NCBI GenBank assembly: GCA_965603825.1
Contig: CBFDEM010000013.1
Location: 558,001-622,000 of the forward strand
Length of the DNA: 64,000 bases
Source of the DNA: Blepharisma stoltei ATCC 30299
Taxonomy: Eukaryota; Protista; Ciliophora
Direction of reading: 5' to 3'
Shown here: piece after piece, positions 9,330 through 13,848 of the stretch
Position numbering within the stretch: position 1 is the stretch's first letter
Layout: each line of letters begins with the position of its first letter
Notes under the pieces: generated by a model
What the model was told of the DNA's origin: nothing
The model's input: the letters and a program-made list of their open reading frames with translations, nothing else
Databases searched by the model: none
Position numbers and translations under genes: made by a program

Positions 9330-10238
9330 ATGCTGCTATGAGATTTCTTTGTCTGAGTTGGGGCTTTAGCAATTTTATATTACCTTGGAAAATGGGCCAT
9401 TAGGACTTTTTCTAAGATTAATATAGAAAGCTATAAGGACGGCTGGGTTATGATCACTGGATCTACAGCTGGAATTGGGAAAGAGTTTGCTAAAGAATTC
9501 TCTAGGAGAAACTTTAAAGTACTTTTAATAGCAAGGAATGAGAAGAAAATCAATGAGATTATTAGAGAAATCAAAAAAGAAAACCCTGCAGCAGTTGTAG
9601 AATATCTGGTAGCTGATTTTAAGTATTCCCATAGAGACCCTGAAAATTTTTATCGCACCCTAATTTCTTCACTTGCCAATTATGAAATTTCTATTTTAGT
9701 GAACAATATAGGAGTAGCTCACTTCAAATTTTTGCCAGAACAAAGTCTTGATGACATTGAAGAAATGCTTGGTGTTAACATTTACCCACAGACCATGATA
9801 TCTTATCATTTACTTCCTAAACTTTTTCAAAGGTATAAGAGAGAGAATAAAAGATCTCTTATCATGAACATTTGTGCAATTATGGATATAATGATCACAC
9901 CTACAGCTAGCATATACTCAGCTACTAAAATTTATAATGCATATTTAAGCGAGATTCTTAGATATGAAAATTCAGAATTTATTGATGTTGCTACTATTAA
10001 GCCAGGCCCTGTGATGACAGATTTGGTGGTAAACAACCATGGAGAAAATTTTCCTATGATGATTTCTGCTGAATCTTTTGTTAGTAGCTCATTAAAAAGC
10101 TTGCATAAAGGGATACAGTATGGCCATTGGAAGCATGCGGTTTTTGCAAAATTTTTTGAAGTGGTTCCTTATCAAATAATGATATTTTTTGTGCAAAAGT
10201 TGATCCCAATCGCTAAGAAATATAATTTAATTCAATAA
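9330..10238 (+). CDS. SDR oxidoreductase, 17beta-HSD12 / very-long-chain 3-ketoacyl-CoA reductase-like
   Basis: ATG 9330 plus two TGA(Trp) restore an N-terminal membrane anchor; TGSTAGIG, NNIG, YSATK catalytic motif. Confidence 0.85.
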
Positions 10239-10257: not shown

Positions 10258-13200
10258 TTACTGCCTTTTCGTGTACTGCAGTATCTGATCGAGCCTACTT
10301 GTTTGCTCTGCTAAAAACTTATCTTGCTCTTTCAGCTTAGCCATGGCTAAATCACTGTTTTGCTGATTCGAGGTGTTAATTTTATCAATTGTATTTTGGA
10401 GAGCCCTTAGCTTTCCTTCCCATCCTCCATCATCGCTCTCTTTTTCATACTCTTTGCAGACTTGGATATACTGTTTGGATACAACATTTCTTCTGGTGAA
10501 CATCATGCTTTCTACTTCAATAATCATATCAAGCAGCTCTTTGGCATCAGCAGCTACACTGTCGCTGAGCACTCTTTCATACGTATCTCCGATAATGGAA
10601 ATTAATAAATTGAGCATAATGATAGGGTTTATGATTAAAGCACATGTCAAGCACATCCACTCAATAATATTATAATCTTCCCCTTCAAAGTTTCCCAGCA
10701 CCAAATTATATGAAATTTTCAAATAATCCAGCATAACAGGAACTTCCATTTTTCTTTCCAACACAATGAATAAAAATGTAAAAGCGAGCGTAGAATAGAG
10801 CAAAAGTATCAAAAATCCTGATATATCAACAGCAACCTGAAATAACAAATTAATCAGATACCTAGTTGTCGTCAGTAGCCTAAAGTATGTAATCCCTCTT
10901 AGCCAACTCAAAAAGGTCGCCAAGGCAAATATAGACGCCATCAAATCTGGCAGCAAATGAAACCATTCACTTGTTAAATAAATAAACATAAACATCCCAC
11001 GGCCCCAATCCACATAATTTCATATATCTTCGAAATAAGACGCCCCAGAAATCATCATCTGGAAACACTCGTAAAACAGCAGAAACATATTCACCACAGA
11101 CAGGACTATTTGAAAGTAAAAGTTACCAATATAAAAAGCTGTATAAACGCAAAGGGTTATCATATAAGTAAAAAACATGCCTCCTTGGTACATCATAGTG
11201 TATCTTGCAGTTTCCCATTTATAATTAATAATTTCTTGTACCAAATCGCTACGCAAGACATCTAAGTTAGGGCAGTCCGCTAAAGATTCAAGGAAATCAA
11301 TGCTTTCTTTGCTGCCCATTACAAAGTTGATTCTTACATAGCTTTCATAAAAAGTAATGCCCATCCCTTGAGAACTTAGCATAGACTCATCTAAAAAATC
11401 TTCGGGTCTGACTCTGCAATGTTCAGAAATATGGACAATTGGTAGATCTGCATCTTTATCGCAAAACTTAGGCAGGGATCTTCTATTGGCTTCTTGGTAT
11501 ATGACGTCGTATAAGTCTCCTAATAGAGAGAACCCTTTTTTATTCATATCAACGAGGTCGTTTTCAAGCATCTGCAATATAAAAGGGTTCAGTTTTCCGA
11601 TTTTACAGAGAGCAGACACGACTTCATCTCTTACACCTTTCATTTCTCTTAATAAGCAGATAGATAAAGGATGAAATCCGTCCTTAGAAGGAATAATTGG
11701 CGCTGATTTCTGAGAAAGTGATGCGCTCAGGTATTCTTTGTAGTTCAAAAATGCGTAAAAATGCAGGGTGTTAAGAAATTCTGGGAGAATGATAAAGCTG
11801 TCCATATCAGGGTCATGCTGAGGGTGGATGTCATTTATAAGCGACTTCATATAAGTCAAGAATTTTTGCTTATTTTCTTCAGGACCAAGAACTCTTGGGT
11901 TTGGAGAACTCAGAGGGTTTTCTTGTAAATAGATCATTTCAAGCTCCCCTGTAACTATAAGTTTTTCATCAGAAGAAACAGCCATCGACAATATTGGCTG
12001 CTTTCGAGTAAGAAAAGTAAGAGGAATTCTATATTTAAGCGAAAAAATTTGGATTGTTTTATCTTTTGAAGACGTTAGTAGCGTTTCGTTGTCTTTTAGC
12101 ACATATACAGAAGTGACATAATCTTTGTGCTGCTTGAAAATGGTTTCTTGATTTTTTTCGAAAATATTCCAAATTTTCACAACTCCCATTGAACTGCCTG
12201 AAATGATGTATCGATCGTTCATATCAATAGCTATCGTTGTTATTTGTTCTTGAGCTTGAATGCAGTACCGCTGAGAGCCAGTTTTCACGTTCCATACTCT
12301 TAAGGTTTTATCGCTGCTTCCTGATATGACTGTTTCTCCATCATGACTTACACAGACTGACCATATACTTTGTTGGTGGCCTTTAAGAGGAGTGTTTTCC
12401 ATCGTTCCAATATGCCAGACTAAAATGACTGAATCTCCACCTCCAGTGATTAAATAAGTTGAGTCTGAGGTAAAGCACATATCTCTTATAGGCCCTCTAT
12501 GTGCTTGTATTGCTTGGTCTCTTAGCATTTTGGTTTTTAAATCAATCACATATAGCCAGCCAAGCTCATCTCCTACAGCCATATATTTTTCATCAGGCGA
12601 ACAGCAAGTTTTAAGCCCACATCCATGACTTGTCAGTATTAAACTTGCTTCGTCAGTTTCTGGGTCCCAAAACCTTACAGCTTTATCACTTCCACAGGAA
12701 ACTACGCATTTCGTCTTATCAGTCAAAGCAACTGAAGTAAAATTATTTCCGAGGGCTTTGAAAACTTCTTCTTCTAAAAATTGAGGGAAACTCCATACTT
12801 TGACCGATTTATCGTCTGAGCAAGAAATAATGAAATCCTGTTCAGGAGATATTAAAAGATCACAGATTTGGCCTATATGTGCATTCAATGTGACTTCTCG
12901 GCGCTCTTTGTCAAGATCCCAGACTTTTATAGTAAAATCAGCACTTCCTGAGACTAAAAAGCAGCTATCAGCACTAAAAGCAAGTGATTTTATGCGCTCA
13001 GTGTGGTCTGTATAGATGACGAGAGGGGTAAAATCTTTGATATTCCAGACGATAACTTTGTGGTCTTCTCCACCTGATGCTAGACATGTAGACTTGGGGT
13101 TTGTTGCTAAGCTTCATACACAGCCAGTATGAGACTTCAAATTTAAGACCTCTTCTTGAAATTCGTTATCAAAAACTCTTATTAAGCAGTCATCGCCTCC

Positions 13201-13848
13201 AGAAAATACAAACCGATCATCAAGAGTGACAGCGACACATTTGACCGCTCCACCATGATTTATTATAACTCTTTCAGCAGTTTTTTTGTTCATATTCCAT
13301 CTCCTGACAGTTTTGTCATTACTTGCGGAGTACAATAGATCATGGCTTGCACTTAGGGTGATATAGTTTACCTGTTCAGTGTGTCCTTGAAATTCAAACT
13401 CCAGCTCGAATCTTGGAAGCTGAAAAACTCGAATAATTGGGCTTTCTCCACATACAGCAGCTCTGTTATTGTTTTCGTCTAAACAAATCCCATACAGCTG
13501 TCCATAGCCCAAAGGCACATCATCAGTAATTTTTCCTTCAAGTTTGTGATATCGAGAGACATTGCCATTTGAGCTACCATAAAATAATGTAAAACCATCA
13601 TAAGAAAGTGCTAGACAATTAATAGCAAAAGGAGTTGATACTGTTGTTTCAGCGTTTTTTAGAATGTAGGTTTCAGCATCTGTAATTTTGGAAATGAGAA
13701 GAGTTTGCTGGGGAGATAAAGCTTTTTTCATTTTGGATTTCTTGGTTCGCTTAGAACCGTCGCTTAGAAAATATGAAGTGAAGAAGGAATGCTTTGGAGC
13801 TTGCTGTGAAGGATGTGGAGGAAGAAGAGGTTGCTTTAAGTCTTCCAT
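10258..13848 (-). CDS. WD40-repeat (about 14 repeats) TRP-like cation channel, 1196 aa
   Basis: Three ORFs join in one frame through TGA 13114-13116 and 11020-11022; GH..WD repeats; IINYKW pre-S1; DIWNYVD; pore LVLGNF; S6 IMLNLLISIIGDTYERV; C-terminal coiled coil. Confidence 0.88.

Follow-up and report, generated by a model that had tools for sequence, protein, structure and literature searches.

The question raised by positions 10258 to 13848 of the analysed DNA of Blepharisma stoltei ATCC 30299 (contig CBFDEM010000013.1, positions 558,001 to 622,000, a stretch of 64,000 nucleotides referred to as the window) is whether a minus-strand frame that appears as three open reading frames (ORFs) encodes a single protein and to which class this protein belongs. 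The frame is one continuous gene of 1196 codons read through two UGA codons as tryptophan, and its product is, with good confidence, one subunit of a TRPW-type cation channel, a type-I-like transient receptor potential (TRP) channel carrying propellers of WD40 repeats at its N-terminus. WD40-TRP channels are a known class, functionally characterised in 2026, and this gene adds to it a member that is itself uncharacterised.

Under the bacterial and standard tables the frame holds exactly two internal stops, both TGA, at codons 245 and 943. In the somatic genome of B. stoltei, which measures 41 Mbp and has tiny introns of 15-16 bp, UGA is reassigned to Trp (PMC9942806), and with this code the three ORFs join into a single read-through ORF, as the sequence-only reading of the window had proposed, on the minus strand, which that reading had not stated. 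The species is borne out by two proteins that NCBI names as B. stoltei (P0002 and P0004), both contained exactly in ORFs at other loci of the assembly. The assignment of TGA to Trp is due, besides the published code, to the alignment of homologs (n=19), in which Trp stands opposite codon 245 in 11 sequences and opposite codon 943 in 14, and to the interchange of TGA and TGG among 34 intact paralogs of the same genome: the column of codon 943 holds Trp in 28 of the 34 (18 TGG and 10 TGA), and the invariant columns W560 and W878 are written as 12 TGA and 22 TGG and as 12 TGA and 21 TGG, respectively. Altogether these paralogs contain 236 in-frame TGAs and 489 TGGs. An in-frame stop lies 7 codons upstream of the ATG, the ORF being of 1203 aa and the coding sequence of 1196, and the 5' flank has a GC content of about 20%. 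No introns were detected in the coding sequence, either by translation or by the gapless alignment with an ortholog contig that also keeps both TGAs.

This contig (L053; JGI 3300016922, Ga0186641_100132) is 3572 nt long and matches positions 13830-10261 at 93.8% identity; it spans this coding sequence only, from codon 7 to the last sense codon, has no TAA or TAG in frame and shows no intron-sized indel relative to the genomic gene. Among the 222 substitutions that separate the two sequences 200 fall at third codon positions, and the codon differences comprise 203 synonymous and 10 non-synonymous changes; since this ratio is found with both TGAs retained, the frame is constrained continuously over the two codons, and strong purifying selection acts along its whole length. 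The propellers receive 9 of the 10 amino-acid changes. In the genome, the convergent neighbour is a short-chain dehydrogenase gene (adh_short, E 5e-27) at 9450-10238 of the plus strand, and the 19 nt left between the two stop codons are an example of compact intergenic spacing. Because L053 both begins and ends inside the coding sequence although the neighbouring gene is so close, its extent suggests a transcript-derived contig, which probably stems from the transcriptome of another Blepharisma, a sister strain or a sister species. Gene callers that use the standard code split L053 at both TGAs into products of 238, 568, and 243 aa, and the same code cuts the genomic frame at the same two sites, as would be expected of three separate genes (a WD40 protein, a WD40 protein with half a membrane domain, and a small membrane protein) or of a pseudogene with two stops. 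This explanation is effectively refuted by the code of B. stoltei, by the position of both TGAs on Trp-conserved columns (a WD40 blade and the WNxxD of the third transmembrane helix, S3), by the continuation of the 203:10 ratio past both sites and by the abundance of in-frame TGAs in the paralogs; in addition, a break at codon 943 would divide the six-transmembrane domain between S2 and S3.

The domain architecture was derived from scans of the window's three pieces, split at the TGAs, or of full-length homologs, and from AlphaFold models of the paralog P0002, which has the same length as the window protein and is 62.7% identical to it overall, each sequence having only five gap positions in the alignment, all of them located before residue 643. 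Pfam WD40 (PF00400) is found on the window's own pieces with E 3e-18 and 4e-59, together with many other beta-propeller families. The model of the N-terminal half of P0002, built from a 40-sequence alignment, has a mean predicted local distance difference test (pLDDT) of 90.8 and a predicted template modelling score (pTM) of 0.80, and is made up of one helix followed by 55 strand elements, one of which is a fused pair; the resulting 56 strands correspond to 14 four-stranded blades. The best Foldseek matches of this model are all tandem-propeller proteins aligned over ~580-700 columns, the first being the Nostoc 14-WD40 protein 2ymu (E 2e-41) and the second Apaf-1 (E 4e-34), and others including the UTPs of the small-subunit processome, Aip1, described as 'two seven-bladed propellers', and axonemal WD proteins. 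Based on the strand count and on these matches, the predicted 14-blade region most likely consists of two seven-bladed propellers (7+7), which agrees with the approximately 14 repeats and the tandem arrangement recognised from the letters. Apaf-1, Aip1, UTP21/WDR36, PWP2, and 2ymu share this 14-blade (or 7+8) tandem fold with Foldseek values of 1e-28 to 2e-41 over ~600 residues, a likeness at the level of the fold only (14-22% identity), and, unlike the window protein, these tandem WD40 proteins are soluble and have no channel domain.

In the C-terminal half, Pfam recognises Ion_trans in six full-length homologs with 27-40 bits against a cutoff of 25; neither Ion_trans nor PKD_channel exceeds the threshold on the window's three pieces, and for Ion_trans the sub-threshold result is explained by TGA codon 943, which splits the domain. 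Thus, of the two families that the earlier reading had expected, WD40 is returned by the window itself and Ion_trans by its homologs. PKD_channel reaches only 9-10 bits against a cutoff of 22.4, both in the window pieces and in the homologs. A search of PDB sequences with the piece covering the linker and S1-S2 alone gave no matches; the third piece (S3-S6 and tail) matches polycystin-2, a Chlamydomonas TRP-like channel, Inactive, and TRPV5/6. A profile of 63 C-terminal halves finds Inactive/TRPV first (2e-15), then the TRPM2 chanzyme, TRPA1, TRPV3, crTRP1, and TRPM8, and the best 60 PDB profile matches are all TRP channels, plus ankyrin through the linker, with no Kv, Nav, or Cav among them.

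The AlphaFold model of the C-terminal half of P0002 (pLDDT 90.3, pTM 0.82) begins with helical hairpins, which are followed by a small beta sheet and by pre-S1 helices; six long helices come next, the fifth and the sixth being separated by a short pore helix, and the chain continues with a helix directly after S6, a beta strand, and a terminal helix of 53 residues. Foldseek places TRPA1 and TRPV3 first (E 4e-10, ~560 columns), and VIA-align gives Z scores of 19-21 to TRPV5/2/6, TRPA1, and Nanchung-Inactive over ~430 residues; the aligned span, model positions 23-514, extends from the last ankyrin repeats through the post-TRP strand. A shape search of the ESM Atlas gives a TM score of 0.69 to pyrexia, and the nearest neighbours in a protein language model are the painless, TRPC, TRPV3, and TRPA1 clusters. 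According to the model, the C-terminal half is therefore a TRPV/TRPA-type core with a six-transmembrane TRP-like domain and a pore helix, the same channel type that had been recognised from its membrane motifs. These motifs are all present in the protein (TLHFYA and GFHPLS, IINYKW, WNYVD, LVLGNF, and MLNLLISIIGDTY), and the coiled-coil tail noted with them corresponds to the terminal helix of the model. In particular, the transmembrane domain displays a KW motif at the pre-S1/S1 boundary, WNYVD in S3, TRY in the S4-S5 linker, and the S6 motif NPIIMLNLLISIIGDTY. The loop between S1, which ends at residue 904, and S2, which starts at residue 910, has about 5 residues (905-909), and S4 has no periodic Arg ladder. 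The consensus of the putative selectivity filter in the paralogs is LGDFDTDGY, compared with LGNFEGED in the window protein, and its acidic residues suggest cation selectivity. The helix at residues 1097-1115 starts after a break from S6, has no canonical TRP-box Trp, and aligns within the TRPV/TRPA1 matches.

Some of these results could point to a membrane domain of another branch of the superfamily, as polycystin/TRPP, TRPML (a type II TRP), CatSper, Kv, or CNG: the third window piece alone best matches polycystin-2 (E 1.6e-4), a shallow profile of 7 sequences returns PKD2L1 as the top PDB match (1e-9), and Pfam gives only the generic Ion_trans. Such an origin is highly improbable, since the S1-S2 loop of ~5 residues is incompatible with a polycystin/TOP or TRPML-type ectodomain, the deeper profile of 63 sequences is led by Inactive, TRPM2, TRPA1, and TRPV3, and the linker, the TRP-like helix, the post-TRP strand, and the coiled coil align to TRPV/TRPA1 with Z of ~21; moreover, the missing Arg ladder and the absence of Kv, Nav, and Cav from the best 60 matches speak against the voltage-gated families.

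Between the propellers and the membrane domain lies a linker whose first part contains about 2 degenerate ankyrin-like repeats. The C-half profile matches ankyrin-1/2 at 5e-14 through linker positions 66-118, which gives substance to the degenerate ankyrin-like stretch noticed by eye, and the VIA alignments to TRPV and TRPA1 begin in the last ankyrin repeats of those channels. Pfam scans of the C-terminal halves of six paralogs found no family besides Ion_trans at E<=0.05, hence no Ank family. The protein thus has ~2 such repeats and a WD40 N-terminus in place of the ankyrin domain of at least 5-6 repeats (up to 29) of TRPA, TRPV, and TRPN.

TRP channels marked by N-terminal WD40 repeats have been named TRPW (Coyle et al., bioRxiv 15 June 2026, doi 10.64898/2026.06.15.732144). 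In the choanoflagellate Salpingoeca rosetta, bacterial lipids activate TRPW1, which controls flagellar beating; the cryo-electron microscopy structure at 2.37 angstrom comprises a propeller of 7 blades, a TRP helix, and a coiled coil at the C-terminus, and the agonist occupies a transmembrane pocket that is the counterpart of the vanilloid site, is bounded by S1-S4, the S4-S5 linker, and the TRP helix, and includes R898, Q927, R950, and R1063, while the propeller is proposed by the authors as a protein-interaction surface (doi 10.64898/2026.06.15.732144). The same study reports the WD40-TRP architecture in euglenids, ciliates, diatoms, and chlorophytes, where ankyrin repeats often separate the WD40 region from the transmembrane domain, and places ciliate candidates within the TRPW clade (doi 10.64898/2026.06.15.732144). 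An independent study names the same clade, with 'one or more' propellers (bioRxiv June 2026; PNAS Oct 2026, PMC13663828). The opinion of the sequence-only reading that no functional characterisation existed is consequently outdated, this architecture having been characterised by Coyle et al. 2026, and such a characterisation is among the outcomes that the reading itself had listed as a refutation. Blepharisma and Stentor are not named in the main texts of the two studies, and a literature search for Blepharisma TRP channels found no paper. The 2016 Chlamydomonas ADF1/TRP15 paper was considered as a precedent for WD40-TRP proteins and rejected, because its mentions of WD40 concern FAP16, a different protein.

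The window protein displays the defining feature of TRPW, an N-terminal WD40 region (14 blades) and a TRP transmembrane domain on one polypeptide encoded by the ORF with TGA as Trp. On the basis of the models, it has in common with TRPW1 the N-terminal WD40 repeats, a transmembrane domain of the type-I-like TRP kind, a TRP-helix-like helix after S6, and a putative coiled coil at the C-terminus, which corresponds to the predicted 53-residue helix at residues 1143-1195; in addition, both the TRPW family and the Blepharisma family show large lineage-specific expansions of paralogs among free-living protists with cilia or flagella. A single propeller of 7 blades is present in TRPW1, whereas the window protein and nearly all of its ~1200-aa relatives have 14 blades, and many TRPW members contain ankyrin repeats, in contrast to the ~2 degenerate, Pfam-undetected ones found here. 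TRPA1, painless, and pyrexia provide the best Foldseek and Atlas matches across the linker, transmembrane domain, TRP-like helix, post-TRP strand, and coiled coil; TRPA1 also lacks a canonical TRP box and has an S6 of the LNLLI type, but carries 14-17 ankyrin repeats where the window protein has WD40 propellers, at an identity of 13-15%. The highest VIA Z (~21) and the best profile match (Inactive, 2e-15) belong to TRPV1-6 and Nanchung/Inactive, which have in common with the window protein the pre-S1 'L..KW', the linker beta-sheet completed by a C-terminal strand, and the S6 'LN(M/L)LIAxMG(E/D)T'; in contrast, TRPV channels have an ankyrin-repeat domain of six repeats, no C-terminal coiled coil, and no WD40.

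Several points weigh against the assignment as a TRPW subunit. The gene model was built from sequence, with a presumed transcript origin of L053; the structural models describe a 63%-identical paralog instead of the window protein; the shallow profile places PKD2L1 first; and the TRPW membership comes from architecture and predicted fold rather than from a tree with S. rosetta TRPW1. For conduction, selectivity, tetramerisation, ligand, and localisation, the expectations are drawn from likeness to other channels. Furthermore, the window protein has Thr1118 (10495-10497) at a position occupied by Trp in 29 of the 34 paralogs, within the conserved motif FW[RK]R that follows the TRP-like helix. 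The Trp of this position may be the TRP-box-like tryptophan of the family, and the L053 ortholog has no amino-acid change at the codon.

The lack of this near-conserved Trp, together with the occurrence of copies without S1-S3 in the genome and with ~50 paralogs whose coiled coils are highly divergent (16.7% identity), would fit a protein that does not conduct and acts as a scaffold or regulatory subunit, in effect a pseudo-channel working only in heteromers with paralogs. This possibility is considered very unlikely, given that the pore helix, the filter glycine, the acidic filter residues, and the N/P/LNLL motif of S6 are intact and conserved and that the gene is under strong purifying selection.

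As a TRPW-type channel, the protein would be expected to form tetramers in which four subunits enclose a central pore and their coiled coils are bundled beneath it, and the acidic filter LGNFEGED would pass cations including Ca2+. Gating could start from the region formed by S1-S4, the S4-S5 linker, and the TRP helix, which in TRPW1 binds lipid-like agonists; R984, R996 (of the S4-S5 'TRY'), and E1113 are invariant or near-invariant in the paralogs and lie in what may, by analogy, be regions equivalent to the TRPW1 agonist pocket. The propellers, instead of being the main site of ligand binding, may serve as paralog-specific docking platforms, for instance for partners in the cilia or the cortex, and the entry of Ca2+ would then alter ciliary beating or contraction. 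A different role was envisaged by the sequence-only reading, in which the twin propeller is the sensor that clamps a protein or a small ligand, as Apaf-1 does with cytochrome c, and opens the pore through the ankyrin-like linker. Apaf-1 is in fact the second-best Foldseek match (E 4e-34), and the propellers are the most diverged large module of the family (~21% identity against 34% of the transmembrane domain) and the site of 9 of the 10 amino-acid changes in the ortholog, which fits paralog-specific partners; however, the fold shared with Apaf-1 is common to dozens of unrelated tandem-propeller proteins such as UTPs, Aip1, and axonemal WD proteins, the faster divergence may equally reflect a weaker constraint, and the only characterised TRPW binds its agonists in the transmembrane vanilloid-like pocket and not in the propeller. 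A propeller-gated pore therefore finds no specific support and is regarded as unlikely.

The gene belongs to a large family. The channel piece was searched against the whole assembly (41.46 Mb, 64 contigs) and gave 57 matches in the own genome; 41 loci (40 and the window) of the ~55 in the genome were classified. In 34 of them propeller A, propeller B, linker, and transmembrane domain, mostly with the tail, lie in a single ORF of ~1180-1380 aa with TGA as Trp, so that the family counts at least 34 intact paralogs in B. stoltei. Paralogs of B. stoltei are already deposited as 'Ion transport domain-containing protein'. The mean pairwise identity among paralogs is highest in the TRP helix and strand (41%), followed by the transmembrane domain (34%), the linker (28%), the propellers (21%), the coiled coil (16.7%), and the N-terminal tail (13.8%). 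An exhaustive homolog search gave 1788 representative clusters at E<=1e-3; among the matches retrieved, 90 of 92 long proteins combine WD40, linker, and transmembrane domain, with the channel starting near residue 940. Those relatives that carry a species name come from B. stoltei and Stentor coeruleus, and ~1200-aa relatives also occur in many protist assemblies.

Intact paralogs are found in adjacent pairs, as L047 and L022 (contig 13, 817.9-830.4 kb), located ~250 kb away on the same contig as the window, and L028 and L035 (contig 63, 312-321 kb), and Stentor SteCoe_27307 and SteCoe_27309 lie on one 34.9-kb contig; the paired paralogs of both organisms suggest an expansion by local duplication. 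The remaining 7 of the 41 classified loci are fragmented, and five of these were checked. Four of them form a tandem cluster on contig 34 (70.7-87.9 kb): L019 retains the pre-S1 KW and a few residues of S1, meets an in-frame TAA, and resumes at S4, with S1-S3 missing, and in L021, L024, and L026 an in-frame TAA directly precedes the same S4 sequence. The fifth, L023 (contig 45), has several stops in the upstream frame and no recognisable S4 downstream. These truncated copies may be pseudogenes or truncated variants; TRPW members without S1-S2 have been noted in choanoflagellates (PNAS 2026, PMC13663828). Contigs C27 and C35 are both listed at 780130 nt, an agreement that could be due to chance, to duplication of one contig, or to an error of display.

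The features of the gene are collected in the table. The beta strand after the TRP helix joins the linker sheet in TRPV and TRPA1. The N-terminal tail is poorly defined in the P0002 model (residues 1-32 with pLDDT <50, residues 31-40 with an average of 57), and EDLKQPLL, taken earlier as a dileucine-like hint of endomembrane targeting, departs from the canonical [DE]xxxL[LI] in having its acidic residues at -5/-6 of the first Leu; a targeting role likewise finds no support in the low pLDDT and the scarce conservation of the tail among paralogs.

Table. Features of the TRPW-type gene, in window coordinates (position 1 is the first letter of the stretch); structural elements are predicted.
Feature	Residues or codons	Positions	Strand	Basis
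Complete coding sequence (ATG 13846-13848, TAA 10258-10260)	1196 sense codons	10258..13848	minus	
TGA codon 245, read as Trp within a WD40 blade ('HTGCVWSLA'; standard-code 'GCV*SLA')	245	13114..13116	minus	
TGA codon 943, Trp of WNYVD at the start of S3 (standard-code 'DI*NYVD')	943	11020..11022	minus	
N-terminal tail with EDLKQPLL	1-45	13714..13848	minus	unconserved, predicted disordered
Predicted alpha helix before the propellers	46-65	13654..13713	minus	P0002 model
WD40 propeller A, ~blades 1-7	68-352	12793..13647	minus	Pfam, 28 model strands, Foldseek
WD40 propeller B, ~blades 8-14	353-643	11920..12792	minus	Pfam, model, Foldseek
~2 degenerate ankyrin-like repeats (NTLHFYAF...GFHPLSICL) and linker helices	657-783	11500..11880	minus	profile, VIA
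Linker beta-sheet and pre-S1 helices	784-865	11254..11499	minus	model, VIA
Transmembrane domain S1-S6	868-1095	10564..11247	minus	Ion_trans in paralogs, PDB profile, model, fold matches
Pore helix and putative selectivity filter, MLDYLKISYNLV-LGNFEGEDYN	1039-1060	10669..10734	minus	model helix 414-425
TRP-helix-like helix after S6, AADAKELLDMIIEVE	1097-1115	10504..10560	minus	model, conservation
Post-TRP-helix beta strand, QYIQVCKE	1126-1133	10450..10473	minus	model; alignments reach ~model residue 510
C-terminal long helix / coiled coil	1143-1195	10264..10422	minus	model helix 518-570

TRPW represents an ancient branch of the sensory TRP channels, recognised only recently and lost in animals, and this single gene by itself leaves the picture given by the 2026 papers unchanged; a modest interest lies in the size of the heterotrich expansion and in its uniform twin-propeller architecture. 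It is conceivable, at a rather low probability, that the ~1200-aa twin-propeller form is a distinct TRPW subfamily expanded in heterotrichs (~50 genes in B. stoltei) and could serve as the main receptor repertoire of the cell, in which the diverging propellers and coiled coil would set the partner, the location, or the assembly, or would sense ligands. If this were true, the subfamily would couple distinct cues, for example prey lipids, gamones, touch, or signals induced by light, to ciliary reversal. As single cells, ciliates are large and electrically excitable, and classic assays of their behaviour exist; the at least 34 intact twin-propeller genes of Blepharisma, with their Stentor relatives, offer a tractable system for the role of the WD40 module; the same gene set could address whether the sensing of lipids or other ligands by a transmembrane pocket is ancestral.

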